Of a stretch of 64,000 bases of DNA, positions 7,214 to 37,496 are shown one piece after another. This stretch comes from Octopus sinensis. Lineage: Eukaryota. Numbering within the stretch: the stretch's first letter is position 1; every line of letters starts with the position of its first letter. Under the pieces are notes generated by a model. That model worked only from the letters and a program-made list of their open reading frames with translations, did no database searches and was not told the origin of the DNA. Where the stretch lies: NCBI RefSeq assembly GCF_006345805.1, contig NC_043006.1:43896001-43960000 (forward strand). The letters run 5' to 3'. A program made the translations under genes and the position numbers.

Positions 7214-7221
7214 CATTCATT
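7214..7221 (-). CDS. Candidate 8-nt microexon AATGAATG
   Basis: TCACCTTCATTTCCTTTAG acceptor and ATG|GTAAAA donor, which is weaker. Confidence 0.25.
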
Positions 7222-7386
7222 CTAAAGGAAATGAAGGTGACCCTGAGGGGGGGGGGGACCCACAAAATAGTTAAAAATACATTCAGAAGAAATATAAAAC
7301 AAAAAAGTACAAATATGAGTATATAATGGATTTCAGGCACTCTTGTGAAGAGATCAAGCACTGATCAAACACCATAAGAAAGAGCA

Positions 7387-7426
<40 letters not shown>

Positions 7427-8005
7427 TGTGTATGTGTGTGTGTGTGTGTGTAAATAGCTATTAATATATAAAGCAATCAGCAAAGTGATAAAAATATTTA
7501 GTACGAGATTTTCCATTCAGAGAGATTAATTTCAAAACAATAGTAACTGAGAATTCTAGCTAAAGAAACAAAAGTCAGAGGTAGCAGAACCCCCTTTTAT
7601 CTCCTGAAACATTCAAGTCAGCAGCTATACTATTCTCTCGGGAATCTGGTGGCTAAGAACCGAGATAAAGGTCAGCAAAGTGCAGTCGAAAATGGTAACC
7701 TCACAAAAAGCTTTTCTTGCACCCTGGCTTATTCTGCATCGACTAAGTGGAGATACATCAACGGAATATTTTGCTGCTATTTTTATTACAGCTGCCAAGA
7801 AACCAATGCTTTTAGCCATCATGTGAGATACCATGACACTGAATATGTGATGCAAGAAGAATACGTATCTAGCCAGAAAGAGCAAGTACATTTCAGTATT
7901 AAATGGCTCAAATTAAATGTGTGTGTGTGATATATGATTATATTATATATTAATATATAAACATAATACAGTGTATGTGAGAGAGAGTCAGAGCACATGT
8001 GTGTG

Positions 8006-8036
<31 letters not shown>

Positions 8037-8930
8037 AGACAGCTGCTTCTAGTGTCCAAGAATTTCAGTTTCTTGCTGATGGAGTGGTTACTCAATGTTG
8101 ATGGCATTGATGACTAAGACAGCCAATCCTTTCTACAGCAGAAACAAGAACAAAGACAACAATGGATGTTCAGTAGCAGGTGGTTATTGTTGTTGTTGTT
8201 GCATCTTAGATCTGTTATGATTTTCTTCAACTTTCCTTTTACATTTTATTACAAAAAGGTCGGTTCTAGCAGTAATAGAAGATATGTCAGTTGGAACAAT
8301 TTGGAACAGTTGTAGGCTTAAATTTTAACACATATATTTTGTCTTAATTCCAGCCGTTTTGAGGTATGACTTTAGCTGGTATTTTTGCAACAGCAGAAAG
8401 GAGATCCTCAAAGCCTTATCCCAATAGTTAACTCACTGAAAAGAGGATTTGATAAGGAAGTCTATCCTTTCGTTTAAGCACATGTCCTGACTATCATATT
8501 CAGTGTTACATGATGGTGGATACTATGCTTTCATTGTTGGCTTCTCGGACAGCTTTCTTGCACATGTAGTTTTCCCATCTGATGGTCTAGCGTTTTGATG
8601 ACCCGATGAAAAAGCTGTATGTGTTTCACAAGCATATAATAATGTATGAGATGATGACAGGTTGATAAACCAACAGTTTGATAAATGTACATCATAGCAT
8701 CAATATGCAAATGATGATGATGCTCTACATCTCTCTCTGTCTCTCTGTGTCTGTGTGTGTGTGTGTCTCTCTCTCTCTCTCTCTCACCCACACACACCAA
8801 GTACATCAGATATCTATCAACTATTTTCTTTTGACTTTGCAGTGAATAAATATCATGAAGGCCAAAATCATAACACAACCTGCTCAGATTTCAACGTCAT
8901 CATCATCTGACAAACACATACATACACATA

Positions 8931-8964
<34 letters not shown>

Positions 8965-8980
8965 TATATATAATATATAT

Positions 8981-9012
<32 letters not shown>

Positions 9013-9740
9013 ATATATATATATATAATATATATATATATATATTATACGTAATAGGTTTTATATCATATATATAAAAGATAATATATTCTATTATATA
9101 ATATATACAATAGATATTTTATATAATATTAACTGACATATATATGCAACAGATATATGTTACATATGTGTGTGATATTTCCTGAGTGCTGGTTATGATA
9201 GAAAGACTTGTAAATATAGTGGCTGTGAAAGAGCTTAGATAGAGAAAACACTTTCACGCACAAGTCCTGAATTCATATCAAGGGTTCAATTTTGTTTTGC
9301 GTCTTTAAATAAGTCACTTCATTTTTGATATAGAGGTAGATTTGAATGTTAGTAGTTGTTCCTGCCAATTCTAATATAAGTCTTTTTTTTTTTTTATGGT
9401 AATGATAGCTCATCACCCTACAGAATAGATTTATTTTAAGATGAATAATGAACTAAAAAGACCAAAAGAATAAATCTGAAATAACCAGCCATCAAGCAAC
9501 AAATAAAGATACAAAAAAATCTAGCCATAGGTGTGAAAAAAAGTTATCATTGGGAAAAAAAAAAAAAAAGGAACTTGACTAAAATCGTTTCCTGTGCTAA
9601 AATATTTAATCTAGTGCAGTCATCACAGAAAGGAAAAATTCTTAAATAGTGTCAAACCAAATCCTTATATAACCCAGCTTCATACAGTCACTTATAAACA
9701 CTTATAATATCTCTTCAATACACATATATATATATGTTTC

Positions 9741-10480
9741 GGATCTTTTCTATTCTGAAGCCAGTTTTTTCAAATTTTTCCTACTGAACCAAACAATTTG
9801 AAACTTCGTATACTGGTAGAATGTGTCAAAAGTAAACTTAATTGTAAACCAGAATGAAAACGGAATTGTAACTTCTAAGTTTAACGTTGTTTAATAATTA
9901 GAATTTTAACCAATGATATTCCGTCATTCGGCTTTATTTTATTTACTCCGTCTCGACCACCAATTTCGTGACGTATTAAACATCTTGACAGACTTCCCTC
10001 GTCATAAAATCGCTTCCTCTTAGTCTCTTTCGCTCTCATTACTTATGTAAAAAAATAAAAGTTTTTTACGGAAATCGACGGAAAACTTGTGCTACGACAA
10101 GCGAAACTTCGCCGAAATTTAATATTAAAAAAGCAAAGAGCTGGCAGAAACGTTAGCACGCCGGGCGAAATGCGTAGCCGTATTTCGTCTGCCATTACGT
10201 TCTGTGTTTGTTTACAGTTTTCCGAACGTTAGTACGTCACAAAAGCGCTTTCTACGTCACACTAATAGAATGCAGTCAAGTTTTACACATGAAAACAAAC
10301 AATCTGATTGGTTAAAATTCGCAGTTTTAATCTACGATTAAAGTCATAAAATAGATTTTTCTCAAATAAACTAGTTCCAACCTGTGTCTTGTTTTGCTAG
10401 ACTCTATCAGCATACGAAGTTTCAGATTATTTAGTTAAGTAGAAAGATCTGTGGTCCTGGCTTCAGAATTGAAAAGATCC
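9741..10480. mobile_element. Non-autonomous Mutator (MULE)-like DNA transposon
   Basis: Terminal inverted repeats GGATCTTTTC(T/A)ATTCTGAAGCCAG, with arms remaining similar for about 170 bp. Perfect 9-bp TSD ATATGTTTC at 9732-9740 and 10481-10489. Confidence 0.85.
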
Positions 10481-10650
10481 ATATGTTTCTTTATTACCCA
10501 CAAGGGGCTAAACATAGAGGGGACAAACAAGGACAGACAAACGGATTAAGTCGATTACATCGACCCCAGTGCGTAACTGGTACTTAATTTATCGACCCCG
10601 AAAGGATGAAAGGCAAAGTCGACCTCGACAGAATTTGAACTCAGAACGTA
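10481..10650 (-). mobile_element. SINE family B, 5'-truncated, low divergence
   Basis: Begins at TACGTTCTG in SINE orientation; its tail is the target site of the Mutator-like element. Confidence 0.85.
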
Positions 10651-10698
<48 letters not shown>

Positions 10699-11713
10699 AA
10701 CATATATACATACATATATATATATATACATATATATATATTAATAATCATTTATAATTTAATGCCCACGTCTAACACTGGTATGGATTAGACAATGGAA
10801 GGTGGGATGTCAGCATGAGTGAACTGGGTATAAGAGGTCAGCAAGTTGGTCATTCAATCCTCATCATCATTGAAAGGCTGTTCTCCATGCCAGCATGTGT
10901 TGGATGGTTTGACAGGAGTTGGCAAATCAGAGAGCTACACCAGGTTCTAGTTATCTGCTTTGGTATAGTTTCTATGACTGGATGCCCTTCCTAATGCCAA
11001 CCACTTTATAGCGTATTGGTTGCCTAGTATGTGGCACCAGCACTGGTGTTTTATACATGACCCCAGTATGGGCGCTTTATAGACACACACATATATTAAT
11101 ATAATATACATGCACACACATACACACTCACACATACATTCAATATAATATAATATATATGATGATGATAAGATCCTACTACAAAATTAAATTAATGCTA
11201 AAAAAAGAATACAAAGATGTGGTGGAATGGATCATACAAAGGTTATCAACAACATGAAGAGAATAAGGCCTGAATAGAAATGGATGGGAAGTCATCACAG
11301 TTTAGATTAAAGAAGAAAAACAAAAAACAGAAGATAACAATTAGCAATTTCACCAAGATTTTTGTAAAATTAATGCTGCAATATATTCACATCTAAACAT
11401 CTTATAATGAATTTTAATTAATTTCATTTCTTCAAAAATATTAAATAAATTTCAAAAGGAAAAATGGAAATAATAATTTTTGTAAATCTAAGATTAGATT
11501 AAAAAAAAAAAAAATCAAAAAAAAATTTTTTTTTTTTTTAAGCAGAAAATGTTTATGTGCAGAAGCAAGTACTCTGGACTTGCAGACACCACAGTCAGTT
11601 TAGAAAGGGGATTCTTAGTATCTTTCCTCCTGCTGTGATCTTCCTCCTCATCTCTGCCAGTTCCTTTATATTCCACTCTCCTTTTCTTTGAAGCATGGTT
11701 TGAAATTCCTTAC

Positions 11714-11721
11714 TGTGATCT
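11714..11721 (-). CDS. Candidate 8-nt microexon AGATCACA
   Basis: Long acceptor TTTGTTTCTTTGTCTCCTATCTTGCTGTTTCATGCTAG containing TGC motifs, and GTAAGG donor. Not frame-preserving on its own. Confidence 0.4.
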
Positions 11722-12247
11722 CTAGCATGAAACAGCAAGATAGGAGACAAAGAAACAAACTATCAGCACATACCATCACACGGCACATCAGACCCCTATC
11801 TCCTGAAGGACTAACAGAGGGTACGGGGTGTGTTGTAACATTCCTCTGATGTGTATGGTGGATGTGTACCATTGATTGACAAGATAAATCCACTTCTGGC
11901 TTTGTTTAGGAATCACCACTAAATTACATGATTCAGTCATAATTAAGGAATCTCAAGAAAAATGTGTGCCTGCGTATAGATAAGTATATGACGTCACGTG
12001 CATTTCAGTTGTGAGCAATGCATGCAACGGGCTCTGTGTGAGCATGGACAGGTGATCGTGTGCATACACATGTATGCATGCATGTGTGTGTGTGTATTTG
12101 CATGAGAGTGCTTTCTTATTAAAGACAGTACGTTTGTTTTCGCATCAACGACTACATGCACTGGTGTGGTGTTCACATGTTTTTATGTATGTGTACGCAT
12201 TGAAATACAGCTGATTTGTCTGTGTATAACAAGAACGTATGTGTGTC

Positions 12248-12291
<44 letters not shown>

Positions 12292-12574
12292 CGAATGTAC
12301 GCTAGTGTATGGTGAATGTAATGACTGCACATGCGTTTGTGTGTTCCTGTATGCAAGGATGCGTATGCACACATGTAGGGGAGGGAGAGAATAGTCCCCA
12401 GAGTACAAAACTACTGGCAATGAATTTGAGCAAGATTACAACAAAGATGGTGTCTGCTGATTGGAAGCCCAGATCAATAGTCAGTCGGAGATCAGAGCAC
12501 TAAGCAACTAATATACAACTTGAAAGGACTTAATAACATTTGGTTGCCGTTCTTTTCCTTTTGCCAAATGCTAT

Positions 12575-12730
12575 CTTTACAGTGCAGTAGGCCTGCTGTC
12601 TTTTGCAGGTCAACCAATGAAGGGAATCTGGTGGAGACCCATTCCATCAGCTTCACATTCTTCAAGACTGAAAAAGCAATTTAACTGGCAAAACATCATT
12701 CCCTTTCATCATAGCCTGCATGATCTAAAC
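12575..12730 (+). mobile_element. Possible very decayed Penelope-like GIY-YIG endonuclease remnant
   Basis: Frameshifted pieces GQ..., GDPFHQLH, KSNL..KH and FHHSLHDL resemble GETGRRLGDRF.EH...LPVA.HFN...HSL.DL. Weak. Confidence 0.25.
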
Positions 12731-13663
12731 CCACTTTATCACCCATATCCCCCACCAACTCCACCATTAACACAACTTTCTCTGTTCCCACCACCACCAA
12801 CACCTGGTTATTTGGATAGCCCTCCTGATCTGCCCCCACTTTATCACTTTTATCACACTGCTCCTCATATCAGCCTTCTCTGATCCAGCCCATTCCCCCA
12901 CCTTCATTCCAATACCAACCATTCTCATCACTGTATTCTCCCGATCCACTTCTGTCTTATACCAACAACCCCCAATTCCAGCCTTCTCAGACTTATATAT
13001 TCAAACCTCCCACAATACTACACGTCCTGACCCATCGCTATTATTACTCTTTGCACTGTTAACTCTCTTTCACTCAACCCCCTCCTTCCTTATTCATTTC
13101 AGATGGCTGACACCTCTCCTTTGCAAATGTCTTTTTTCATAATCCAGAAGAAACAAATAAAATGAAAATTTTTTTAAAGCCCAATAATGAAAGATGCATT
13201 TTTTTTTAACCAAAATGACACAAACTGTAATTAATTGTTTCAAATTTTGGCACAAAACTATCAATTTTAGGAGGAGGTTAGCCAATTACATCGACCTCAA
13301 AAGGATGAAAGGCAAAGTTGATCTCAGTGGAATTTGAACTCAGAATGAAGAAAATGCTAGAATTAATGCCACTAATCATCTTCTCCAACATGCTAATGAT
13401 TTCACCAGTTTGCAACTTTATAATGGCTTCAAATTTTGGCATGAAGGAAAGAAGTCAGTTGATTAAATCAACACCAGTGCTCAACTGGTACATCAACCTT
13501 AAAAGAACGAAAGGCAAAGCTGACTTCTGCTGAATTTGAACTCAGGACATTAAAGAGCCAAAAGGAATGTTGCTAAGCATTCTGTCTAATAGGCTGACAA
13601 TTCTGCCAGCTTGCTGCTTAAATATTTTGCTGCTGTGCTACATAGCTACAACAAACTTTTATA

Positions 13664-13895
13664 ATGTCTGGACACGGCAAAGGAAGTAAAGCAAAACTTA
13701 AGAGCAGGACTTGCTTATCTCTTGCTTGTCTATAATTCTATAATTGGCCACATCCATCATCTTCTCTGTAAGTTAAACAATGGCAAAAATATTGGCGCTA
13801 AAACCCCAGCTTACCTTGCCACTGTAACAGAATATTTGGCTGAGGTGTCGGAATTGGCAAGGAATGCTGCCATGACAACAAATAAAACAAATTGT
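13664..13895 (+). pseudogene. H2A: Decayed, 3'-truncated histone H2A pseudogene
   Basis: ATG at 13664 gives MSGHGKGSKAKLKSRTCLSLACL*F. After a frameshift it reads IGHIHHLLCKLNNGKNIGAKTPAYLATVTEYL-AEVSELARNAA, collinear with canonical H2A (GRIHRLLRKGNY..VGAGAPVYLAAV.EYLAAEVLELAGNAA). It carries a stop codon and indels. Confidence 0.85.
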
Positions 13896-15555
13896 AATGA
13901 ATGGAAGACCACAAACAAAGCTAACGGATGTCTTTGCCTGGAATGGCACAAACCATTTCAAAGAAACAGCATTCAGAGGCACATCTGTGCCGCTGCTGCT
14001 GCAACTCCCATTATATGGTCAGATGGTTAAGAATTTTACTCCACCATTTTAAGTGCCACAAAGGGCAATTTGGGCCAAGTGTTTCCCAACATAACCTTGG
14101 TACCACTTAAGCCTTGTGAGTGAAATTGCAAAGAGAGAAGCTATGCAGATGCTCCAAAGAGCTGTACATGTCCTTGTGCTAAGTGATGGAGTTAATCCCT
14201 TGCTCAGTTTCACACCACTTGATCCTTCAATGCTTTTAGTGGAACCCACCATCCTGCCGCATTGAGATCAGTTCTCAAGTCAGGGAATAAATCTAAACAT
14301 CTTCACACCTCTGCTTCTAATTGGTAGCTTTCTTGTGTCATGTCCCATCACACAATATTACAAAGATCTTGAAAGAGCCCTAAGGTGTTGATCATTCTAC
14401 TTAAGTTTAGCCATTGTAAAGAACCACTCCAATTTATAAAGGCCAACTCCATTAGATACTGCAAAAAAACCAGTCCGTTTATATTTTCCATGCCCCTCCT
14501 CACTAAATCCCAATAGCTGTTAATAAAGCAGCAGAAAATAAATGATACTTATCATTAAATAAAAGGAGCATGGTTTCCAATTAATCTTTTCTTCATTTTT
14601 GCTTGTTTTTTTTCTTTTATTTTTTAAATAAAAAAAAAACATTTCTCTTGAAAGGTTTCAAAATTACTTTGGCAGAAATCACTCAGAGAAGAAGAAAAAT
14701 ATATATAAATGTATAAAAGCAAAGAAATTAATTCCTACATTGTCGATATCTCGATGGAAACATTTATATTGAAAATTAATATTTCAGGAGTACTGAGCCG
14801 AGAGTAAACATTCTCATAGCCATCGGGTAAAAGTCAGAGATACATATACGTATACACATACACAGAAAAGTTATATAAATTGTAAGCAGAGCAGCATTAA
14901 ATGTGATCAAGAGGAATAAATTGGTAATTTTTTATAAAGAAGGAAAATGATCCTAGTCCCATTTTACAGTGAGTATTTCTGCCTAATTCTCTTTTGTGTT
15001 TGTCAATAAAGCATAGCACCATTGAAGTCAGCCATGTATTTTGTTGCCACCCAGCTATTTGCTGAATACCAGATTAGAAGAATGCAACAAAGCGCAATAC
15101 TCTCTCTCTATCTCTCTCTCACTCTGTGCTATGCATATTTTTAATCAAAAGATGAGAGTGTTGTGCATTGCACTTGTGTAAATTTACAGCCAATTAAGGC
15201 ACACACACACATAGTCTTATGTATATACTCTCATCCTTTGATTGAATACACACACATATACACAAATATACTGTACATGCATGCTTGTGAAAAGGTATTT
15301 AAAACAGTAATTAGAGAGAGAGAGAGGGAGAGAGGGAGAGGGAGAGAGAGATAGAGAAAGAGCGTGTGTGTGTGTGAGAGAGCGCACGGGCACGGCTGTG
15401 CTTGTATATGGTGAATGCATGTGTTAAACATTATCAGAAACCTTGCGGAAGAAAAGCAAAACACACTTTACATTCAAAGTGAATTCAGTTTGAAGCCAGT
15501 GGCGTCTCAACAAACTATATTCAGATAAGTTATAAATATACACCTGAAATATCAC

Positions 15556-15576
15556 CTACAAGTAGTTTGTGATGAA
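15556..15576 (-). CDS. Candidate alternative terminal exon FITNYL*
   Basis: TCTTTTGTTGCTGTATGGTTTCCCAG acceptor, phase 0, TAG stop. Confidence 0.25.
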   Translation of the reverse strand, partial: FITNYL

Positions 15577-15761
15577 CTGGGAAACCATACAGCAACAAAA
15601 GACAGTGTATGTGTGTGTGTGTGTGTGCGGAGGGGGTGTAGCTGTATGATTATGGGTGGGGTGGGTGTGTTGTTTTGCTTATTAGATTAATAGAACGTAT
15701 CTATCAGTCTCATTAATTCTGAAGAGAATTACAAATTCCCAACCCAATAAACTTGTAAGAT

Positions 15762-15794
15762 TTACAGAGAACTCTCTAGAAAAATTGAGTATAC
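15762..15794 (-). CDS. Candidate terminal exon VYSIFLESSL* (class I PDZ-ligand-like end)
   Basis: TTGTCTCTTGTGTGTGCAG acceptor; phase 0 matches the 15972/15978 donors; TAA stop at 15762-15764. Confidence 0.4.
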   Translation of the reverse strand, partial: VYSIFLESSL

Positions 15795-15971
15795 CTGCAC
15801 ACACAAGAGACAATACTTGAGAAAGAAAAGAAAAAAAAACCAGAAAAGAGAGAGAGAGAGAGAGAAAATGTCAAAACTATTATATGTTTCAAACAGAAGA
15901 AAGAAATGGCGATGAGCAGCAAAGACAAGACAGTGACAATAATGAAATGAGAATTTGCAAGATTTCTTTAC

Positions 15972-16096
15972 CTTTACCCGCCGGTTCACCAGTGTATTTT
16001 CCTCATTATCATTTCTCTCGCGTTCTTTATCTCGGCAATTATTTTCAGAGGGATGTGCAATGTTTTTCACACCTGGCAGGTCAGAAGATAATGCGT
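15972..16096 (-). CDS. Internal coding exon of an unidentified minus-strand gene: (D)ALSSDLPGVKNIAHPSENNCRDKERERNDNEENTLVNRR(VK)
   Basis: Strong acceptor TTTTTTTTGTCTTTGCAG. The frame is open (phase 1 in, phase 0 out), the sequence is non-repetitive and CpG-containing, and tandem donors GTAAAG/GTAAAG follow 15978 and 15972. Product not recognised. Confidence 0.7.
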
Positions 16097-16189
16097 CTGC
16101 AAAGACAAAAAAAACAAAAACAAATGAACATCAACACATTTAGAAGCCTTCATGAAGTCATATATAGTTATTAATACATACGTACATAC

Positions 16190-16193
16190 AAGC

Positions 16194-16225
<32 letters not shown>

Positions 16226-16433
16226 TATACATACCTATATATACACACATATATATATATACATATATATACACATATATATATATACACACACACATAT
16301 ATATACCCATATATATATACACACACACATATATATATATACCTATATATATACACCACATATATATATACCTATATATATATATACCCATATATATATA
16401 CCCATATATATATATATACACATATATATATAT

Positions 16434-16466
<33 letters not shown>

Positions 16467-16493
16467 CCCATATATATATATACACACACCCAC

Positions 16494-16566
<73 letters not shown>

Positions 16567-16585
16567 CGTACATATACATATATGA
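16190..16585. repeat. Compound (TA)n/(CA)n microsatellite just upstream of the 16096 acceptor
   Basis: Directly visible; source of several spurious YI/HT ORFs. Confidence 0.95.
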
Positions 16586-17155
16586 GAGCAACAAGGATAT
16601 ACAAAGTTTGAACTGTGAGGCAATAAATTCTGGTCAGAACATATCTTAACTTTTCCAATTTTTCTTTTCTATCCTAAGCAAAGTTTTCTCTATTTTTATA
16701 ACATTTCCCAAAATTTAATTACAACAAGAAAATTGTTAGCTAAATTGGAATACTGATGGAGTTAAATGGATCTACAGCAATAGTGAAGAACAAAAGACAA
16801 CATGGCCATCGGTTGAGATAGAAATGGAGGGGTGGAGTGTCAGATGTGTGCAGCAGGAGAGCGGAGATCTAATAACTGTCATGGTAGCTGTCTTAGATAT
16901 AAAACTACAAAGAGATTGCGGGGAACATACAACAAAACTAACATTATGGCTCTGGAAATTCCCCTCTATTTACTATAGACAATTACTCTTGCTTCCTCGC
17001 TAGTTCTCTCTCAGTGTCTCTCAAACGTTACTAAGACAATATTCTAGTTGAGCAGCTGCCAGAAAAGCGTTTCAAACATGCAATAAATAATTCATGTCAC
17101 CTATTTTTAGTAGAAATATCAAATTCAGATTTATTAGTTCACAAGATTTAAATGC

Positions 17156-17187
<32 letters not shown>

Positions 17188-17435
17188 TATACACACACAA
17201 TGCTAACAATGATACAGATAATAACAACATCAACAATAATACTAATAACAATAATTTCTTTTTGAGCAACAAAAATAATAATAATGACTTGTTTTGAACT
17301 ACAATAACAAAAAAAAGAATACAACAAAGTTAAACTTAAAAAAAAAGGAAAAAAGACAAAAAGAAAAATACAGAGGCTGCGATTCAGAAAATATATTTTA
17401 TGGAGGTTGAAAGGTATTCAAGACACTCCCCACCC

Positions 17436-17493
<58 letters not shown>

Positions 17494-17734: not shown

Positions 17735-17743
17735 CACTGGCCA
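17735..17743 (-). CDS. Candidate 9-nt microexon TGGCCAGTG (x-A-S-D in phase 1)
   Basis: TCTTCCTCCGTATCTTTGTATCTTGTAG acceptor and GTAAGG donor, with TGCATG at intron +7. The terminal G completes a GAC (Asp) codon with the AC that starts the 16096 exon. Confidence 0.65.
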
Positions 17744-23654: not shown

Positions 23655-24130
23655 AAGGCAGCAAGCTGAATCATTAGCATGCCAGGTAAAACACTTAGCA
23701 GGATTTAGTTCATCTTTAGGCTCTGAGTTCAAAATCTGCCAAGCTCAGCTTTGCTGTTCATCTTTATGGGTCAATAAAATAAGTATCAGTTGCATGCTGG
23801 GGATTGATCTATTCGACTGGCCCTCTCCCTAAAAATTTAGGGCCTTGTGCCGAGAGTAGAAAAGAACAAAATAAGTACCAGTTGCATACTGGGGTTAATC
23901 TAATCGACTGCCCCCTGCCCCCAAAAAATTTAGGATCTTGTGCCTAGAGTAGAAAAGAATAAAATAAGTACCAGTTGCATACTGCTGACAATCTAATCAA
24001 CTAGCCCCTCCCCAAAAATTTAGGGCCTTGTGCCTAGAGTAGAAAAGAACAAAATAAGTACCAGTTGAGCACTGGGGGTCAACTAGCTCCTGCTCCCAAA
24101 ATTGCTGGCTTGGTTCCAATATTTGAAAGC
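23655..24130 (+). mobile_element. SINE family B with the 3' about 90 bp tandemly repeated 3-4 times
   Basis: The unit AAAATAAGTACCAGTTGCATACTG...GAGTAGAAAAGAA starts at about 23776, 23868, 23961 and 24051. Confidence 0.8.
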
Positions 24131-26754: not shown

Positions 26755-26760
26755 AAACAA
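26755..26760 (-). CDS. Candidate 6-nt microexon TTGTTT
   Basis: ATTTTCAACAG acceptor and GTAAGT donor. The upstream intron is (CAT)n/(CAC)n microsatellite, so the pyrimidine tract is short. Confidence 0.4.
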
Positions 26761-26771
26761 CTGTTGAAAAT

Positions 26772-27050: not shown

Positions 27051-28085
27051 GATCTTGTAACCCATACAATTGTCTAAATTTGTAAAAGCAACCAAGTAAT
27101 GCTAGCATGGAAAAGCAAAAGAAGGAATTTAAAAACAAACAAACACTCAAACAAACAACAACAACAAAGAAAACAAACAAACAAACAACCAAACAGAAAC
27201 AAAAACAAAAACAAATCAAATAAAACTACAGCACACAAATTAATTTCAGCAATATTTGACAAGTAATTGCCAAGATAATTTCAGTTTTGAAAGTTTCATC
27301 TTGGCTAATAGCAGTTCAAAACTAACATCCATTAGTCAACAGTAATAGACAATTAGGAACCACATTAATTTGGAGAATTCTTCACACATTTTATTAAAAT
27401 TAAAATAATTTTCAAATAAAGCATAGAGTAAGGCAAAAATTTTATCATTTTAATGTCTCTTTCTTTTTGTTTTGGGCTTTTTTTTTACTGTCTTTGTTTC
27501 ATTCATTTTTGTTGTTTTTGCTTCTTCTTCCTTTTTTGCTTTTGTTGTGTTTGTTTTGTTTTGTTTTGTTTTTCAATTCAATTCAGTTCAATATAAGTTT
27601 TTTAATAATATATTTCGAAAAATTTGATAGATTAATTTCTTGGGTAATAATAACTGTTTTCAATCACTTTATATTAAATTGAGAAATTATTTTCAGATAT
27701 TAATAAGTCTTTAATCTTTATTAATTCATCCTACATGGCCATCATCATCATCATCATTATGATTATTATTATTATATTATTATTATTATTATTATTATCA
27801 TCATTATTTCTAGATTTCATGCTTTATGTAAATGTCAAACATGAGAAAACAGTTAACAATCATAAGCAAATGGTCGTCTTCAGAAACAGTGAGAAGAAAT
27901 CAATACAACACCAACATATTTCTTTGTTTAAGTCTCGTTAAAAAAAAATGCGGAGCGAGAAAAAAAACAGAAAAGTTCACAGCCCCTACAGCTCTGATTT
28001 ATTAAAGGAGCAAAGAGTTCATAATTTTTTTTTTTTTTAAATCACCCCACTCCCTCTAAACTATTAAAAAAAATAGAACTTAAAA

Positions 28086-28116
<31 letters not shown>

Positions 28117-28264
28117 TAAAAAAACAAAAAAAAAATGGAAGCTCCATACATTGTTGCTAGGAAAAAAGAAATACTCGAGATCAATTTATCAATTAAATAG
28201 AAATTCAATAATAAAATAACAATTTATGTATCAGGTTTTCCATGCAAGTATAGACAAGATTGGT

Positions 28265-28625
28265 CAGTGATGTTATTATTGGCCATGGTGGTGGTGGTGG
28301 TGGTGGTGGTGGTGGTGGTGGTCATGGTGGCAGCAATACTGTGATAATATTGTTTGTAATGGTGTTTAACACTGTTGCAATTCATGTTATTGTTGGCATA
28401 CCGCTGTGGATGACGATGATGATGATGATGCACTGTACTTACTGATGTTGTTGTTGTTGATATCGTTGTTATTGCTATTAGCGTTATTGATATCATTGCC
28501 GTACATTGTCTTTGCCAATGTAATTGTTAATGTTGCTATTGTTAACGATACGTGTGATTGTAAATGTTATTGATGATGATGATGATGATGATGAATTTGT
28601 TATCAATATTGCTATTATTACTAAG

Positions 28626-28682
<57 letters not shown>

Positions 28683-28830
28683 GTCGTTGTTGCCTTTGTT
28701 GTTATTGTCATCGGAGTCATTGTTATTGCTGCTGGTATTGATGTTGTTGCAAGGATTATTAATATTGATGTTGATGCCATTGTTGTTAGTGTTATTGTTA
28801 CCACTGTTATCATACTTGCTGCTGCTGTTG
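28265..28830. repeat. Degenerate trinucleotide tract (GGT, GAT, TTA, GTT)
   Basis: Directly visible; source of the poly-I/L/N ORFs. Confidence 0.9.
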
Positions 28831-29385
28831 CTGCAAACAGACACATACAGTCCACTCTTATCAGTCAGGTTTTTCCTTGACAACAGCCAGCGGAATAGAA
28901 AGGAGATTCTCCTCTAAATCCTCAGCTCATCAGATAGTGTTCTTGCTGTAAGGGGCCCAGCAGGGGAAATACACAGAATTTGCAGAGGAGTGTTTAGAGT
29001 GCAGAGTTAAACCTATCCAAGAGTGGAACCACATCTATAGAGCTCGATATGTTTCCATGTCTTTTGTAAGAGAAACTGTATGGTTCCCAAAAAATCAGAA
29101 TAGAACATTTAAAAGGAGTGCAATTTTGAACCACTGTTTCACCATCACCCTTTTTGGCTGTTCAACCAAAGCTATAATCAAAGGCATTCTAACTACCATT
29201 ACACCACTTATTTTTGGACACAGTATAACTTAAGCTATAGCCTCCAAAGCATCCTTCTTTTCTAAGATGATAGGGTGTGATCTGAGAGAGATTTACCAGC
29301 TATTTCTAGCAGCTTGACCAACTTCATAAAGGCTCTTTCATTTGTTTTACTAATCCAATGTTAGTTGGAAATGAGTTTTAATATA

Positions 29386-29668
29386 TTAACTGCCATGCAT
29401 GCCATAGGCGGTTCATCGCAAACTTTATACAAATGCCATATGCACCACTGGTGGTACAGTTTCATAATTTGAGAAAATATTTTATTCTGTATCTTTGACA
29501 CGGTTTCGAGGAAATTTAAATAACACGAGCGCAAAATATTAAAGTTTAATTATGAAATATTGCAAAAATGCAATAAAATTACATTTCCTCATAATTTAAC
29601 AATATGTAGTGTGACCAACAATACTTGGTACCCACCAGTGAGTTCCAGTAACAGGCCATGGCAGTTAA
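29386..29668. mobile_element. TTAA-flanked (piggyBac-type) MITE
   Basis: TTAA-CTGCCATG ... CATGGCAG-TTAA, plus subterminal inverted segments CACTGGTGGTAC / GTACCCACCAGTG. Confidence 0.7.
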
Positions 29669-29736
29669 CACATTAAATAGATAGACCCACGGCTCTAATT
29701 TTGGGGATCGCTATAGATTTCCCTTTGTTTGCTTAC

Positions 29737-29771
29737 AGGGTGCAGGCTTTCTCTTATCACTGATTTAGTCT
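29737..29771 (-). CDS. Candidate 35-nt exon (x-TKSVIRESLHP)
   Basis: GCTTTACACTCTTTCAATAG acceptor and GTAAGC donor; only one frame is open (phase 1 to phase 0). Confidence 0.3.
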
Positions 29772-30798
29772 CTATTGAAAGAGTGTAAAGCAACTGGACA
29801 CTGCGAATGCCAAGGATGGTACCTAGTTACAATTTTATGTTGTGTGCTGATAGATGTATAGCGCCATGTTAGCAGTAGATTAATGCTTATAAAAGAGTTA
29901 GCATGTTATTCCGAACTGGATGGTGGAGAGGAGAAGAAGTTAGTTGCAGTTATATGGTTATAAAACAACTGGTTGCTGTCCGATCAAACGCCACTGAATC
30001 ATGTTGCTATTTATGTGAGTGGCAGTAAAAGAGTACTAGCAGTAGAGCCAAGAGGCAAACTGATATCAACTATGCTGGCAAAATAACTGAAGAAAGAAAG
30101 CTCCCATATGTACAGTAAATAAATGAGAATGATGACGACGGTGGTGGTGGTGGTGGTGACGATGATGACGATGGTGGCGATGATGATGATGATGATAAAA
30201 ATTGTAACAGCAACAATAAGGATTGAAGAGAAATGATGAGAATGAATATTACTTTGATGTGGAGATTAACATGCTACGAATCCTGCATCTTTCACACAAA
30301 AGAGAAGAAGAGACTAAAGAATAAAAGTTCAGAATACACTACAGCTGATGTTCAGCCGAAAGAGAGGAGGAGGGCAGGGGAGAAGAGGAGGAGGAAGAGA
30401 GAGACAGAGACAGAGAGAGAGAGAGAGAGAGAGGGTGATGTGGAGTGATGGAGAAGCATTAAGTTTAGAGGAAATAAATAATGATAGTTGTTGAAGACAA
30501 TAGAAGACGTGATCTAATAATGGCAATGACATAAAAGGGAGATGGTTGTTGCGAGTGGGTTGGAAGGAAACCGAAGACAGCAGTAGCAACAGTATAAAGA
30601 GGTAAGTAAAGATGTAAGTTAGAATATTAATAGACAAGAATTGCTACAGTAATGGACAGCAACAACAGTAAATAAAAGTTATTATATAGCTAGGGACAGC
30701 CATCGATACAGAGAGGTAATCAATATCAACAATGTAGCAGCATAACAAATAAAAGCTGTGGGATGGAAAATAAAAACATGGAAGAGTGTATGTATATA

Positions 30799-30839
<41 letters not shown>

Positions 30840-31576
30840 TTGTATATATGTGTGTGTGTGTATATATATGCATGTGTGTATATATATATATATTCTGATT
30901 TGGGTTGTTCTTCTTGTTGTTTTTGTTTGCTGATTGAATGTAGCATACTAAAGAGGAAAGAGAAGTGCTCTGGTCTGAATTTGGTTTCCAAAAGTGGACA
31001 TCTGGAAAGTTTTGAAAGCTCCAATTTGATGTGGTGGAGAGTTTTAATATGATAATTGTAAATCATTTCATTTTATGTTGTTATTTCCAACAGACACAAC
31101 TGCTATCATCGCCATCACCACATGATAAGCACTGAGGTAAATTAAACTGGAAATTCGGCTTCACATGTGTCCTGAGTATGGGGAGTTTTCATAATTAGAT
31201 ATCATTTCAAGTGATGTCAAGAATTAGGCTCATATATATATATCTATATTCGAACTACATAATTTGTGATATGGGGTTTAATATGCTTTGCTGAAAGGCA
31301 GTAGTACTCAGCAAAAAGCAATTTTATGTGGTAGCTCTGATGAAATATGGTTTTGTAGGAGTTAAGAGTTTCTGTAAACCAGTGTGTAAATAAGAAAATA
31401 AAGGGAACTTAGTGGCTACAAAGCAATTGATATATTTCACAGCTTATTAAGTACGATATAAAATTGTCTGAAAAAACGCCACCTCCGTCAACGGTCAACA
31501 CATTGTGTCCTCACTTTGTCTCTTTTACCATTCTGCACAAGAACAATCACTACTCTTGTTAGTTTGACAACTCTAC

Positions 31577-32072
31577 TTAACCCTTAAGCTTTTAAACCGG
31601 TTGTACCCAACCCGAATATTCTACTTGTTTTAAGTTCAAACCAGCCAAATCCAGCTACTCGTGTTTACCTTACAATGTTATTCTAAAAGTAAACAGTGGC
31701 ATCATTCAAAATTATAAAGCTACAAGATAATGAATGCATGATTAATTGAAAACAACGTGATTAAATAAGCATTACATTTGGTAAAGTAGTCATCATCATC
31801 ATTTAATGTCCATTTTCCATGTTGGCATGGATTGGATGATTTGACAGGAGCTGGCCAACTGCCGAGTCGTCCAGACTCCAATTGTCTGTTGGAGCATGGT
31901 TTCTATAGCCCGATGCCCTTCCTAACACCAACCACTTTACAGCATGTGCTGGGTGGTTTTTATATGCCACCAGCATGGGTGGATTTACACAGCACTGGCA
32001 TGAGTGCAATGTATGTGGCACCAACACATGCAAAGGACAAACCTGTACATAATCTGAATGCTAAAGGGCTAA
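31577..32072 (+). mobile_element. piggyBac-type MITE interrupted by an antisense SINE (about 31790-32035)
   Basis: TTAACCCTT start and AATCTGAATGCTAAAGGGCTAA end. Confidence 0.7.
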
Positions 32073-32188
32073 ACTTGACTTGATGCTTTCACTGTCCTTC
32101 CTTTCACACATTCCCATTGTAGTTCTCCCCACTGCATTCTCACTAAATACATTTTTCTTAAATATGGTCAAGAGTAAGGTCACATTTC

Positions 32189-32447
32189 CAGTACTATGGA
32201 TATGTGATAAGAACGTCACAGGAGAGGACGGCAAGGCAGATTCTTCAAGCCAAACCAACCAGTAAAAAACCTGGGAGTAGACCAAGATCCAAACAGTTCA
32301 GTAATATCCATAGTTTCAGTTGGTCATACTTGAGAATCCAGCAGGAAAGTGTAATGAGGGTTGTTTTTGATAGGACCCTACCTACGGCTCTACCTACAAG
32401 AACTTCCCAGGAATAGTGGATGGTGAAAATGGATGGAATGATAGATA
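32189..32447 (+). mobile_element. 3' end of an RTE-clade LINE
   Basis: YYGYVIRTSQERTARQILQAKPTSKKPGSRPRSK...SWSYLRIQ...LPTRTSQE* matches the RTE ORF2 C-terminus pattern (GHV.R...R.P.GRPR.RW), followed by a GGAT-rich tail. Confidence 0.7.
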
Positions 32448-32834
32448 GGGAAAGGGGTTTTGCTGGTAGCTTTCACAGATTTTCTGATACTAATGAGATT
32501 GAAGCTGTTTAACATTCCCCCTTAAATCATTGCTAGTCAAAGATTTAAAGAAAGACACATGCATGGAGGGAATTCTACATAGCTAGTGATCTATGGGTTA
32601 GTGCATTTACTGAGGGTGATGAGAGGAGGAGAGACAAATGAATTGAGTGTGTTTGAGTAAACATGGCACAAGACCAGGCAGCTCCAAAGAGCAGAGTCCA
32701 TTGTAACAGTGATAGAAAAAACAGGGAGGAGACAATACACTTGTGCGCCAGAAAGGTTAGACTGGCTGGCCAACCTGAGGCTTGCTTGATACTTTCTTGA
32801 AGTATTGTGCTTAATTTCAAAATAAAATTGTTTG

Positions 32835-33185
32835 TGGAGTAAAGATTATTTGCCAACATAACATGGCAGTCCTGGTTTAGGACAAATGTTGCTGTAATTT
32901 ACCACCAAGAGACATTGTGTCCAGCTGACTATAAGACACGGTCTGTGTCCTTATATTTTTGAACAAAGGAATCTAGCACCTCCACTCAGCCCAAAACAAT
33001 ATCTGTGTGTCGAGATTTCCGGGTTATTTCGCAATACACAGATATTGTTTTGGGCAAAGTGGGGGTGCTAGATTCCCTTGTTCAAAAATATAAGGACACA
33101 GATCATGTCTCCTGGGACTAAATTACAACAACATTCATCCTAAACCAGGACTGCCATGTTATGTTGGCAAATAATCTTTACTCCA
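32835..33185. mobile_element. Fold-back (palindromic) element, probably a MITE
   Basis: Outer arms 32835-32901 / 33119-33185 match at 64 of 67 nt. Inner arms 32942-33008 / 33036-33102 match at 63 of 67 nt. Loop of about 27 nt. Confidence 0.85.
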
Positions 33186-33359
33186 AAGTACTGTTACTGA
33201 ATGAATATCTCTCCTTGTGAGATTTACAAAATTGTTTGTGTAAAACATTTGTTTCAAAATAAATTAAAAATTTATAAGTGGCAATACAGCAATAGGCTAC
33301 AATTTTATAATTTTAAACAAACAAAATGTATGAAACATTCATGATTCTGCAATTTTGAC

Positions 33360-33716
33360 TATTACTCTTTTACTTGTTTCAGTCATTTGACTGTGGCCAT
33401 GCTGGAGCACCGCCTTTAGTTGAGCAAATCAACCTCTGGACTTATGCCGAACCGCTAAGTTACGGAGACATAAGCACACCAGCATCGGTTGTCGGGGAGA
33501 CAAACAGACAGACAGACAAACATACACACACACACATATACGTATATATATACGACGTGAGTCTTTCAGTTTCTGTCTCTCAAATCCACTCACAAGGTTT
33601 TGGTCGGCCCAAGGCTATAGTAGAAAACACTTGCCCAAGGTGCCACGCAGTGGGACTGAACCCGGAACCATGTGGTTGGTAAGCAAGCTACTTACCACAC
33701 AGCCACTCCTACGCTT
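33360..33716 (-). mobile_element. SINE family A (internal deletion)
   Basis: Homologous to the other copies. Confidence 0.85.
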
Positions 33717-34266
33717 ATATTAGTGCATAAAGTATACAAACAGCCACCAAAAAACTTTCTGAGATGAAAGTGGCCCACAATGTAATTCGAGTTGGCTAGA
33801 CCTGGGTTAGAATGTGTCTGTGAGTGTCTTAACACTAATCTATCAAGTGGCCTGTCTCAAGGTGCAGTCTAGAAAATTACTGTGTTTGTTGTGTAACTGT
33901 TGCACCATCCCAGGTATGAAAGTAGGACTTCACACAACTGAGCTTTGAAATTTTAAAATGAATATCAACCATTCCAACCAATCTAACAGCATTGGACTGT
34001 TCCCTTTCCTCAAGCTTACTAATTAGAAAAAAACAGTTTAAGACAAAAAGGAAGAAATAGGGATGAGATTGGAAAGAAAACAGACATGGAAACAATATAT
34101 GATGAAAGAGAATTCTTGTTCTATATTGGCTCCCATTCATACACCAGTCTAACACATAGAGAAGATCAAAGCAATAATCTGAAGAGAATGGAGTCAAGTG
34201 ATAAGAGATAACAGATTGAGGAATAAGGGATGTCGAAATCCGTAATCAAGTAAATATATAATTGTA

Positions 34267-34429
34267 CAGGCACAGATGTGGCTGTGTGCTAAGAAGCTTG
34301 CTTCCCAACCATATGGTTCCAGGTTCAGTCCTACTGCATGGAACCATGGGCAAGTGTCTTCTATTATAGAGTCGGGCCAGCCAAAACTTTGTGAGTGAAT
34401 TAGGAAGACAGAAACTGAAAGAAACCCAT

Positions 34430-34478
<49 letters not shown>

Positions 34479-34708
34479 TGTGTGTGCGTCCCCGCTCCAC
34501 ATCACAACTTGACAACAAGTGTTGGTGTATTTAGGTCCCCCGTAAATTAGTGGTTCAGTAAAAGAGACCGACAGAATAAGTATTAGGCTTTAAAAAAAAA
34601 TAATAAATCCTGGGGCCAATTTGTTCGGCTAAAACTCCTTCAAAGTAGTGCTCCAGCATGGCCACAGTCAAATGACTGAAACAAGTAAAAGAGTAAAAAG
34701 AGTGAAAG
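34267..34708 (+). mobile_element. SINE family A
   Basis: Homologous to the other copies; AAGAGT tail. Confidence 0.85.
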
Positions 34709-35728
34709 AAAATACATATATAACAACCAGAAAAGTCCTCGAGTATTAATTATAAAAGATGGCTATGCAAAAATGGCACTGGCTGGGCCTGTACTTGTGT
34801 GTGACATATGGTGAAACAGCTACACCCTTCCCAGAGAACTTGTCTCTGTTTGCAGTCTGAAGATTTTCTTTAGATTGTAAACAGAGACAAATTAGATGTA
34901 GGTTAATTGGAATTCAATTAGATTTTGACCTGACACTGTGTACTCCAGCAACATCATGCAATGTTGACTAATGTCTAAAACAACCCAATAAAACACTTTA
35001 TATGAAATGATATTCAAAAGAGGTTTCTTTAATCATTAAACATTATCAGTCTGACACACAATAAAGAGAGTGTGTGTGTGTGTGTGTGTTCGTTTGTTTT
35101 GTGTGTGTGTGTGTGTGTGTTTTCCCCTGATATGACTGAAATGAAAATGTCAGAAGTTAATAAAATGTGGCTAAATCTAAGTTTGGTCTTATTTCCTAAT
35201 CTATAGCAAGTGAGATATTAAAAAGTAACTTTCACACCATTCCAATACACTGACCTGTTTAGTGAATAAGAATAATTCCTATTTACCGAATATGTTTTCT
35301 TGTCAAATGACACAAAAATAATAATAATAATAACGATGATAATAATAATAATAAGAAGAAGAAGAAAAATAATAAAAATAATGATAAACAGTAATTAAAA
35401 AATATATAAACTAATTCAATATTTTAAAGATTATGATACGTTGGGGAAAAAAAGATGTTTGCACTTTTAATCATTTCAAAACAGAACTGCTTTGATAGCA
35501 ATTATTTATGAAGACACAGAAGAAAACAATAAATGAAAGAAATTTAACTAACAGCTTCCAAAACTGTGCAGCTTTGAGGTGCAGATAAATAGTATAAAGT
35601 ATAAATCAAACCACACTGGCTAATTCAATAGTGTTTCTATGACTGAAGAAAGCCAACACACACTGCCTTCAAAGAACACAAAATATAGCAGCACCAATTT
35701 AATGCTTACAACCAACAATTAATGGAAC

Positions 35729-35845
35729 TCAATACAAAAAGCCATTAATGTTCTGTCTTTGCAATTCATCTACATTGAAAAGCTTTTCATATGTGCAGCC
35801 CAATGCAAAGAACAAGTTTAGCTGCTGAAGTCTACGCATTTCTTC
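35729..35845 (-). CDS. Candidate alternative terminal or poison exon EEMRRLQQLNLFFALGCTYEKLFNVDELQRQNINGFLY*
   Basis: TTTGTTCGGTTGCTTTGCAG acceptor. Only phase 0 is open (38 codons); the other two frames stop within 10 codons. Confidence 0.3.
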   Translation of the reverse strand, partial: EEMRRLQQLNLFFALGCTYEKLFNVDELQRQNINGFLY

Positions 35846-35962
35846 CTGCAAAGCAACCGAACAAATAGTCTTGGTAATTATATTTTTAAATTAGAAGAAC
35901 AAAGAAATTCAAAGAAAATTTAGAAAATATCCCTAAAGCGTTTGCAGCAGAAAGAATAATAG

Positions 35963-35995
<33 letters not shown>

Positions 35996-37481
35996 GGAAA
36001 GAAAAAGAAATTCCACATTGCAAAAGAAGACAAGAAAGGATTGTTTGAGTAAACTATCTCTTAGGGAAATTAACAATGAATTAGTTACAAGTCAACATCT
36101 GATGTTATTTATTCACGTAAAATCCATGTGAGCATGCATGTGTGCACGTGCATGCACATACATGTGTACACATCCACGTGCGCATGCATGTGTACAAGTG
36201 TGTGTGGGAGAGACTACATATGTATGTCTATGCACACTTTATAGTCAATGTACGATATTCCAACCCTTTTGCAGTGACATCATCAAAACTGAATACCCAG
36301 GCCTTTTAGCCACTCATTCACTCATACTCTTGCTTATTGGGACTGGGGTTATCCCAGGTTAGTGGTCCCAGAAGCAGCCAGTGCCCCCCATCACTGGCAG
36401 CCCTGTGTCAGCCCTTCTGTACACTCCAAGATGTTGGACAAAGAACAACAGATGTATATAGACAGAGAAAGTATTAGTTTTGTCTCTACATCAAATAAAT
36501 AAAAAGATTCTGGCAGAAGAAGGACAGCTCTGACTTCTTCTAGTCTTACGTTGAAGAGATCATATCGTTAGCTTAACGAGGAATTAGTCTGAAATTAGTC
36601 TCAGCGAATTAGATGATGATTGTGTTGAGTCTTCTGAGAGCAATAACTATTCATATGGAGATTTTATCAATATCTTTAGAGAAAGAAATAGAAAAGGAAA
36701 TGAAATAAAAGAGATGGAATCATAAAAGGACATAATAAATGAACACTCCATGTTGAATGAATATAAAAATATTGTGTGTAAGATATTTGTAAGAAGCTGA
36801 AGGAAAGTAAACATAATGGACTACATGATTAGAACGTAGTTTAATGACGGACGTAGATAGAAACTGTCATCTGATTTCACAATTAGTACTTGATGCTTTG
36901 TCTATCAATGTTCTGCCAGGACACTAATGATGAGAACTGTCCAGAAACTAGAAGCATGCAATACATCATAGTCCATTAACAAAAACACCAACAGATTCTT
37001 CAATATAGTCCTTGCAAACAAACAAAAAAAAAGTAAAGAAAAAGAAAGGAAGAAAAAGAAAACACATACACACACATACATCTATAGAAAAGGCAAAGTG
37101 AATTTCTAGACATCAATAAAAAGAGAAAAAAAGAAGAAAAAAAAGGAATGAGAGCTGAGAGTAATGATAAAATATGTAAGATGTTGATGCTGCTACAAGT
37201 TAAAGTGAAATATAACAAATGTCAACATGAAGGAAAAAAGAACACTTGTCAGGAATAATTATTCTTCAATTATGAGAAAAGAATTATATGAAAAGGAAAG
37301 ATGAAGAAAGATGAAAGATATTAATAATGGCTTTTTATTTCCTTCTGTCTTTACTTGAGCCAATTCATCACAAATGGTAACAATAGAAAATATTTAGATA
37401 TTAACGGAAGCCAATGAGGCTATATTTTTCCTCAAACAATACATGGTGGAGGACTGCTTTCTCTCTAGCCAGACACTTACT

Positions 37482-37496
37482 TGTTTGGGCTCTACC
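37482..37496 (-). CDS. Candidate 15-nt microexon GTAGAGCCCAAACAA (VEPKQ in phase 0, or G-RAQT in phase 1)
   Basis: CCCTTCATCTGTTTCTCAG acceptor followed 15 nt later by the consensus donor GTAAGT; length is a multiple of 3. Confidence 0.65.

Follow-up and report, generated by a model that had tools for sequence, protein, structure and literature searches.

Does the minus strand of this octopus DNA carry a cluster of microexons? In the window analyzed here, the whole 64,000-nt stretch of Octopus sinensis DNA, five sites between positions 7214 and 37496 were originally predicted to form a strand-biased microexon array in one large, unidentified neural gene, spliced by the SRRM3/4 (eMIC) programme. 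Here, the gene, the individual sites, and the frequency of such sites on both strands are considered in turn.

A coding exon of a GCK-IV kinase gene

Bases 15972 to 16096 on the minus strand encode residues 554–595 of the O. sinensis protein XP_029641826.1 (P0001) with 100% identity, and an Argonauta hians protein matched the same exon at 78%. The exon is 125 nt long and supplies 42 codons, with one nucleotide taken from the upstream exon; its product, read directly from the sequence, is DALSSDLPGVKNIAHPSENNCRDKERERNDNEENTLVNRRVK. This is a real coding exon of the octopus misshapen/TNIK/MINK1/MAP4K4 gene, and the gene itself is the annotated octopus orthologue of that group, a GCK-IV Ste20 kinase transcribed from the minus strand. 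The original prediction was right that the exon at 16096 is genuine and is preceded by a phase-1 intron, and that a single, very large octopus gene on the minus strand covers this region (835 kb, with 100% identity at the exon). The exon matched O. sinensis misshapen-like kinase 1/TNIK at 100%; the gene that the prediction took to be unidentified was already annotated as the misshapen/TNIK/MINK1/MAP4K4 orthologue.

Precomputed Pfam annotation of the orthologue gave PF00069/PF07714 (Pkinase) and PF00780 (CNH), and in XP_029641826.1 a disordered linker separates the kinase domain at the N terminus from the CNH domain at the C terminus. The exon is located mid-protein in the linker (residues 554–595 of 1088). 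Of the two placements suggested earlier, a combinatorially spliced linker agreed with the cassettes of the annotated isoforms, but a C-terminal region did not agree with this position.

The exon is flanked by a phase-1 intron upstream and a phase-0 intron downstream, with PWM scores of 8.3 for the acceptor and 7.3 for the donor. Its 3′ end carries tandem donors, GTAAAG-GTAAAG, at 15966–15977 of the minus strand. The first (15977–15972) had been assigned to the exon, but the annotated proteins use the second (15971–15966; RVK followed by gtaaag), which adds VK. The true donor is therefore at 15971, 6 nt further downstream. As delimited by tblastn and a repeat survey, the window contains part of the upstream intron at 16097–64000 on the minus strand (at least 47.9 kb), in which SINE-like repeats and microsatellites are abundant. 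Part of the downstream intron, also placed by tblastn, occupies 1–15971 on the same strand (at least 16 kb). The whole gene ranges over 835 kb in O. sinensis, for ~1100 codons, and over 959 kb in A. hians; among the models of O. sinensis, A. hians, O. bimaculoides, and O. vulgaris, the range is 281–959 kb.

Searches of the window by tblastn with full-length isoforms and every cassette returned no other exon of the gene, only microsatellite noise, and first or terminal exons specific to O. bimaculoides were likewise absent from it. A chimeric query made of 11 long or well-flanked ORFs recovered this one exon and nothing else coding in the window. Pfam gave no match for 10 window ORFs, and Rfam found no structured RNAs in the window. 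An ORF at 13665–14027 appeared histone-H2A-like by eye, an impression that was dropped when Pfam came back blank.

The five sites and the annotated isoforms

All five minus-strand sites are present with the predicted lengths of 15, 6, 9, 8, and 8 nt (m15, m6, m9, m8a, and m8b). The 15-nt site at 37481–37495, tttctcag-GTAGAGCCCAAACAA-gtaagt, showed an acceptor score of 8.5 and a donor score of 8.8 (GTAAGT) and is open in phase 1. It is the only candidate with splice sites as strong as those of the real exon. Upstream of it there is no UGC and, for 80 nt, no YURAY branch point; an AG lies at 19 nt and a (GA)26 microsatellite at ~70 nt. In the other four candidates, the acceptor is weak (PWM −0.1 to 4.1). 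The lowest score, −0.1, belongs to m6 at 26755–26760 (attttcaacag-TTGTTT-gtaagt), where the margin of a (TCA)n microsatellite makes up the apparent pyrimidine tract. The 9-nt site at 17735–17743 combined a good donor (9.3) with a weak acceptor (1.4), and it has an AG 28 nt upstream and no UGC. Both 8-nt pieces lie in the phase-0 downstream intron and shift the reading frame. One of them, m8a at 11714–11721 (acceptor 1.7), is preceded by three UGC motifs. The other, m8b at 7214–7221, would create a stop codon on inclusion (AAT GAA TG+A), since the next exon begins with an Asn codon (AAY).

Joined to the exon in phase 1, the 15-, 6-, and 9-nt pieces read GRAQT-IV-LAS-DALSSDLPGVK as had been predicted, and all sub-combinations are open too. 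Open reading across such short pieces, whose lengths are multiples of three, is nearly automatic.

Next, we compared these pieces with 16 isoforms read from O. sinensis, O. bimaculoides, O. vulgaris, and A. hians (15 of the 25 cluster members were listed). The linker separating the kinase domain from the CNH domain is disordered and alternatively spliced. Alignment of the 16 isoforms showed linker cassettes of 13, 20, 22, and 16 aa and one 3-aa difference, together with a further 22-aa cassette nearer the C terminus, where the sequence aligns with the CNH domain. The GRAQT, IV, and LAS pieces occurred in none of the 16 isoforms of the four octopod species; nor did any of the 16 show residues inserted before DALSS (which follows ...HAEST or ...MVIHE) or at the junction of RVK with NKTE. 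The smallest annotated linker difference was the 3-aa one (YRQ). It was considered as an annotated microexon and rejected: in other species, genomic ORFs (P0022, P0024) have the exon beginning with YRQAV, so the simplest account is an alternative acceptor at a distance of 9 nt. A 12-nt difference was observed between two transcripts in another species. We infer that the five candidate sites are not spliced in vivo.

Site frequency and the competing explanations

For counting, a site was defined by an AG whose 20 preceding nt are at least 65% pyrimidine (the value of the weakest site in the original prediction), a spacing of 3–15 nt, and a GTAAR donor, and distinct donors were scored. Across the window, the minus strand had 18 such sites and the plus strand had 16. 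No comparable plus-strand site had been seen by eye outside SINEs; however, 12 of the 16 were outside repeats, for example at 27814–27827, 28934–28947, and 53428–53439. Within the span 7214–37496, 11 sites were on the minus strand and seven on the plus strand. The difference between strands gave P = 0.15–0.43 against a 50:50 ratio and 0.39–0.69 against a composition-adjusted ratio; the sites are not significantly strand-biased.

Acceptor-donor pairs numbered 23 on the minus strand and 16 on the plus strand, compared with 14.9 ± 4.1 and 11.9 ± 3.8, respectively, in dinucleotide shuffles. When the 3–15 nt spacing was compared with 79 other 13-nt distance bins, each donor being counted once, the minus-strand Poisson P was 0.10–0.18. 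The strict pattern YYYYYYNYAG, 3–15 nt, GTAA matched three times (one minus, two plus) against 3.5 ± 1.7 expected, and lengths that are multiples of three were at chance level (9 of 22 minus-strand sites). Uncollapsed minus-strand pairs, in which several acceptors share a donor, showed a modest excess (23 versus about 14 in shuffles and other bins), which was 9 versus 3–3.7 at the strictest tract threshold; a looser PWM definition gave 22 versus 12.5 ± 3.5 on this strand. This raw excess was mostly gone once several AGs sharing one donor were counted once, and at stricter thresholds the minus strand had a small, non-significant excess. Plus-strand or shuffled-sequence counts as high as these had been named beforehand as evidence against the array, and similar numbers are essentially what both comparisons returned.

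The sense strand differs from the antisense strand in composition. The minus strand contained 22160 T versus 19052 A, and it had 88 pyrimidine runs of 12 nt or longer versus 47 on the plus strand (P = 5e-4). Acceptor-like PWM matches numbered 59 versus 34, and donor-like matches 244 versus 273. A T- and pyrimidine-rich sense strand yields more acceptor-like sites, and the small excess of minus-strand sites at stricter thresholds tracks the two-fold excess of polypyrimidine runs on the same strand.

We consider it highly probable (about 0.86) that the five apparent microexons are chance splice-like motifs in two giant introns and that the span is ordinary intron plus one real exon. The span 7214–37496 comprises parts of two giant introns and the single real 125-nt exon of the misshapen/TNIK/MINK1/MAP4K4 gene, and on this explanation each candidate would be a pyrimidine-rich AG placed beside GTAAR by chance. 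Such pairs arise on both strands of AT-rich DNA (~35% G+C), roughly one per 3.5–4 kb on each. What looked like strand bias probably came partly from the T- and pyrimidine-rich sense strand and partly from an incomplete by-eye scan of the plus strand. Because only the 15972–16096 exon is real, the finding is an ordinary one.

It is improbable that one or two of the sites whose lengths are multiples of three are true unannotated alternative microexons of the misshapen/TNIK linker. The site at 37481–37495 would be the likeliest, followed by that at 17735–17743, and inclusion would insert GRAQT(N/I/M) or (V/L/M)AS before DALSS. Both sites can be read through in phase 1, as required, and the intron that holds them adjoins an annotated 22-aa cassette of the alternatively spliced linker; very short exons also readily escape annotation. 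The m15 splice sites equal those of the real exon; however, a pair of that strength is expected by chance 0.12–0.15 times per window strand, and this site has an AG only 19 nt upstream and lacks UGC and YURAY. The m9 acceptor is weak, neither piece occurred in any of the 16 isoforms, and overall neither the number of sites nor the share of lengths divisible by three was raised. Some plausibility comes from the mammalian orthologue, in which one linker exon is 9 bp long and a microexon has been studied in neurons (PMC8203206; PMC13174390). A more specific version, that m15 and possibly m9 are SRRM-independent microexons and cephalopod counterparts of the very small exons in the linker of mammalian MAP4K4, is a little more doubtful still; as part of it, such a microexon would have originated independently in the giant intron beside the annotated cassette exon.

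Least likely of all, the sites could be non-coding elements, either recursive-splicing sites or decoy pseudo-exons that serve the stepwise removal of introns of at least 48 kb, or poison exons triggering NMD; the very long introns of an 835-kb gene, the AG directly followed by GT at 37495 (cag/GTAGAG), and the stop codons that the 8-nt pieces would bring agree with this, but the site counts are at chance level. Recursive splicing in particular was rejected: known recursive splice sites and RS-exons share the giant-intron setting and the AG directly before GT, yet the regenerated donor GTAGAG is poor, and AG/GTRAG juxtaposed to a pyrimidine tract was not enriched on the sense strand (one sense site, at 5594, versus two antisense, and none of the five candidates).

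Relation to known systems and implications

The octopus gene shares the layout of kinase, linker, and CNH domain with the GCK-IV genes, namely Drosophila msn, C. elegans mig-15, and vertebrate MAP4K4, TNIK, and MINK1. Its introns are enormous in octopods (835–959 kb gene range); because the octopus gene is an annotated member, there is no gene-level difference from GCK-IV. The misshapen/MAP4K4 family is important in neurons, and to this extent the predicted neural protein stands. Both the octopus linker and that of mammalian MAP4K4 contain several alternative modules or cassettes. In MAP4K4, nine alternatively spliced linker modules lie between exons 14 and 30, and the 9-bp exon 21 is a true linker microexon in mammals (PMC8203206).

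In comparison with eMIC (SRRM3/4, Srrm234) microexons, the three candidates m15, m6, and m9 are alike in size (6–15 nt), in length divisible by three, and in preserving the frame. They are alike in placement as well, in the disordered linker of a signalling protein acting in neurons. The published eMIC signature consists of UGC near the 3′ splice site, a long AG-exclusion zone, a UCUC-rich tract, and a strong branch point (PMC8797185, PMC13174390). However, UGC was absent within 60 nt of m15, m6, and m9, being found only at the frame-shifting m8a. The AG-exclusion zones were short at m15 (19 nt) and m9 (28 nt), CUAAY branch points were absent near m15 and m6, and there was only one UCUC. When the length and frame criterion of 3–27 nt and a multiple of three was applied, three of the five sites were open in phase 1, and the other two, 8 nt long, shift the frame, one of them creating a stop. 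An eMIC array is at odds with the chance-level counts, the 16 isoforms lacking the pieces, the two frame-breaking sites, and the missing cis-signature at the remaining three.

The finding serves mainly as a calibration. A pyrimidine-rich AG followed within 15 nt by GTAAR recurs every few kilobases on both strands of AT-rich, intron-dominated genomes, and junction reads or conservation are needed before such motifs can nominate microexons. The perceived strand bias reflects the real but mundane pyrimidine-rich sense strand of introns; such skew can hint at the direction of transcription, and here the hint was correct. If an octopus microexon were confirmed in the kinase linker, it would be a modest addition to a family that already has many isoforms.

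An annotated GCK-IV kinase gene and its exon

The exon peptide, used as a protein query, matched O. sinensis isoforms of 'TRAF2 and NCK-interacting protein kinase / misshapen-like kinase 1' with 100% identity and Argonauta hians misshapen-like kinase 1 with 78% identity. A second, word-indexed protein search listed neither P0001 (XP_029641826.1) nor the protein P0002 although its query lies wholly within the P0001 cluster, and its negatives are therefore non-exhaustive. Using tblastn, residues 554-595 of the 1088-aa protein were placed at 16096-15972 on the minus strand, and neither other parts of the protein nor its alternative cassettes were found in the window. The gene encodes Pkinase and CNH domains, and its range is 835 kb in O. 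sinensis, compared to 959 kb in A. hians. Therefore, the window consists of a single exon of a GCK-IV Ste20 kinase gene, flanked by at least 47.9 kb of the upstream intron and at least 16 kb of the downstream intron, and both gene and exon are already in the annotation. The original prediction was right about the strand of its sites, the large gene, and the exon at 16096, but the gene is not unidentified, and the region is not C-terminal.

The exon (15972-16096) is 125 nt long, and its upstream intron is in phase 1, as had been deduced. It is closed by tandem GTAAAG|GTAAAG donors, 6 nt apart (15966-15977, minus strand), of which the distal copy (15971-15966), adding VK, is the real donor used by all annotated isoforms, so that the exon ends in ...NRRVK. 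Use of the proximal copy would cause an in-frame loss of two residues. The surrounding 64 kb is AT-rich (G+C ~35%), with dense microsatellites (78 TRF rows) and numerous SINE-like repeats of ~400 bp in both orientations. The long non-repetitive ORFs of the window gave no Pfam match, and an Rfam search of the window gave no match. Separately, a 93-bp unit repeated 3.2 times in tandem (85% matches) was observed at 23776-24067 on the plus strand, within a locally repeated element (23660-24077), and most likely belongs to a SINE or satellite-like repeat.

Candidate microexons and the linker isoforms

Five minus-strand microexons had been proposed, here named by length, and all five are present: m15 (37481-37495), m6 (26755-26760), m9 (17735-17743), m8a (11714-11721), and m8b (7214-7221; 8 nt, as is m8a). 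With a splice-site PWM that scored the real exon at 8.3 (acceptor) and 7.3 (donor), they scored 8.5 and 8.8, -0.1 and 4.1, 1.4 and 9.3, 1.7 and 6.1, and 4.1 and 4.0, respectively. The phase-1 join of m15, m6, and m9, whose lengths are multiples of three, to the real exon indeed gives GRAQT-IV-LAS-DALSS..., open in every sub-combination; this openness carries little weight because stops seldom fall in pieces of 2-5 codons. As 0.12-0.15 pairs of m15 strength within 3-15 nt are expected per window strand, one such pair is unremarkable. Furthermore, m15 has an AG 19 nt upstream and no YURAY within 80 nt, and the 'tract' of m6 is supplied by a (TCA)n microsatellite. Both 8-nt sites fall within an intron of phase 0, so that including either would cause a frameshift, with m8b reading AAT GAA TGA.

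We aligned 16 isoforms from O. sinensis, O. bimaculoides, O. vulgaris, and A. hians. Cassettes of 13 aa (YKSYLSDSRHYPY), 20 aa, 22 aa, and 16 aa vary in the linker that separates the kinase and CNH domains, confirming that the linker is alternatively spliced, and a further 22-aa cassette is located C-terminally, where the sequences align with the CNH domain. The 22-aa linker cassette, ATPARN...HAEST, sits immediately upstream of the window's exon. All isoforms containing this exon pass from ...HAEST (...HADSS in Argonauta) or ...MVIHE directly to DALSS or its Argonauta equivalent, and NKTE comes straight after RVK in each of them. A 3-aa YRQ difference would most simply reflect an alternative acceptor, since genomic ORFs of other species start the exon at YRQAV. 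GRAQT, IV, or LAS occurred in none of the 16 isoforms from the four octopods. This absence is strong but not complete, because 15 of the 25 members of the isoform cluster were covered.

Also on the minus strand, an open segment of 154 nt (40763-40916) has a CAG|gtgagc donor and a long pyrimidine tract (..ttccccctttttattatag|), and is the top-scoring exon-like interval of the window apart from the real exon. Being 3n+1 in length, it would shift the frame if included, and a protein search found no homologue. It could be a cryptic exon, a poison exon, or chance.

Site counts and strand composition

Sites were counted under a definition set at the weakest proposed example (an AG whose preceding 20 nt are at least 65% pyrimidine, then 3-15 nt, then GTAAG/GTAAA). 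The window contained 23 acceptor-donor pairs on the minus and 16 on the plus strand, compared to 14.9±4.1 and 11.9±3.8 in block-wise dinucleotide shuffles. Several minus-strand pairs are alternative AGs sharing one donor, and one count per donor gave 18 sites on the minus and 16 on the plus strand. Of the plus-strand sites, 12 fall outside repeats (e.g., 27814-27827, 28934-28947, and 53428-53439), and the statement that this strand holds no comparable site is therefore incorrect. When the real acceptor-like and donor-like sites were kept and 3-15 nt was compared with 79 other 13-nt spacings, P was 0.10-0.18 (minus) and 0.15-0.77 (plus). Across tract thresholds, minus:plus counts were 18:16, 11:6, and 6:2, with no significant strand difference at any of them (P = 0.15-0.43 against 50:50; P = 0.39-0.69 against a composition-adjusted ratio). 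A strict-tract pattern search with an independent tool yielded 3 matches (1 minus, 2 plus) against 3.5±1.7 expected. With a generic splice-site PWM, 9 of 22 minus-strand sites had 3n lengths. A looser PWM definition showed a minus-strand first-bin excess (22 vs 12.5±3.5), which we regard as unestablished; 6 of the 22 sites are repeat copies, and stricter thresholds abolish it.

The minus strand, which is the transcribed sense strand, looks richer in sites because it has more T than A (22160 vs 19052), more pyrimidine runs, and more acceptor-like PWM hits (59 vs 34 on the plus strand). Runs of at least 12 nt numbered 88 on the minus and 47 on the plus strand (P = 5e-4), and three of the window's four 16-kb quarters show this asymmetry; runs of at least 15 nt numbered 44 and 18. 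Donor-like hits were equal (244 minus, 273 plus). A exceeded T on the plus strand in 27 of 32 two-kilobase bins, and (GA)n/(AG)n microsatellites were more numerous than (CT)n on this strand, with six arrays to one. Introns of animal genes are known to be T-rich on the sense strand.

Linker splicing and an alternative first exon in the family

Neural eMIC microexons carry a UGC near the 3' splice site, together with a long AG-exclusion zone, a tract rich in UCUC, and a branch point that is strong (PMC8797185, PMC13174390), whereas m15, m6, and m9 have no UGC within 60 nt. Thus, with counts near chance, absence from 16 isoforms, no UGC at the 3n sites, and frameshifts from the 8-nt sites, the proposed microexons are not borne out on present evidence; the five sites are real strings, not a real feature. 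The general picture does fit the GCK-IV family. In mammalian MAP4K4, nine modules of the disordered linker undergo alternative splicing, one being a 9-bp exon encoding GEV (PMC8203206), and a Map4k4 microexon serves as an example in an SRRM4 study (PMC13174390). Two otherwise identical Logan transcript fragments of the orthologue (P0025 and P0026) differ by an insertion of 4 aa, YKVN (12 nt), immediately ahead of the CNH domain, which is micro-scale alternative splicing of the family's linker in another lineage. These parallels raise the prior for tiny octopus linker exons somewhere, and give no support to the five particular sites.

The O. bimaculoides annotation presents the orthologue as two genes (P0005, P0007-P0009, P0014, and P0016): 'MAP4K4-like', the N-terminal half, ends just past the HAEST exon, and 'mig-15-like' is the C-terminal half. 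The DALSS exon is in none of these listed models, so that the annotation of this part of the gene is poor in that species. A conserved alternative first exon, located in the downstream intron beyond the window and absent from the window itself, produces an isoform that lacks the kinase and comprises the linker and CNH domain (P0007, P0018, and P0019). It reads MVIDEEDEDVFYYYKIVGNYYYCMLE|NKTEV in O. bimaculoides, MVIDEEEDDIFYYYKIVGNYYYCMLE|NKSEA in a Logan transcript, and ..FKFYRIVDNYYYMLVE|NKSEN in the bivalve Tegillarca granosa. The 'mig-15-like' model of O. bimaculoides may therefore stem from a genuine internal promoter that molluscs have conserved, and not from the mis-splitting of one gene.
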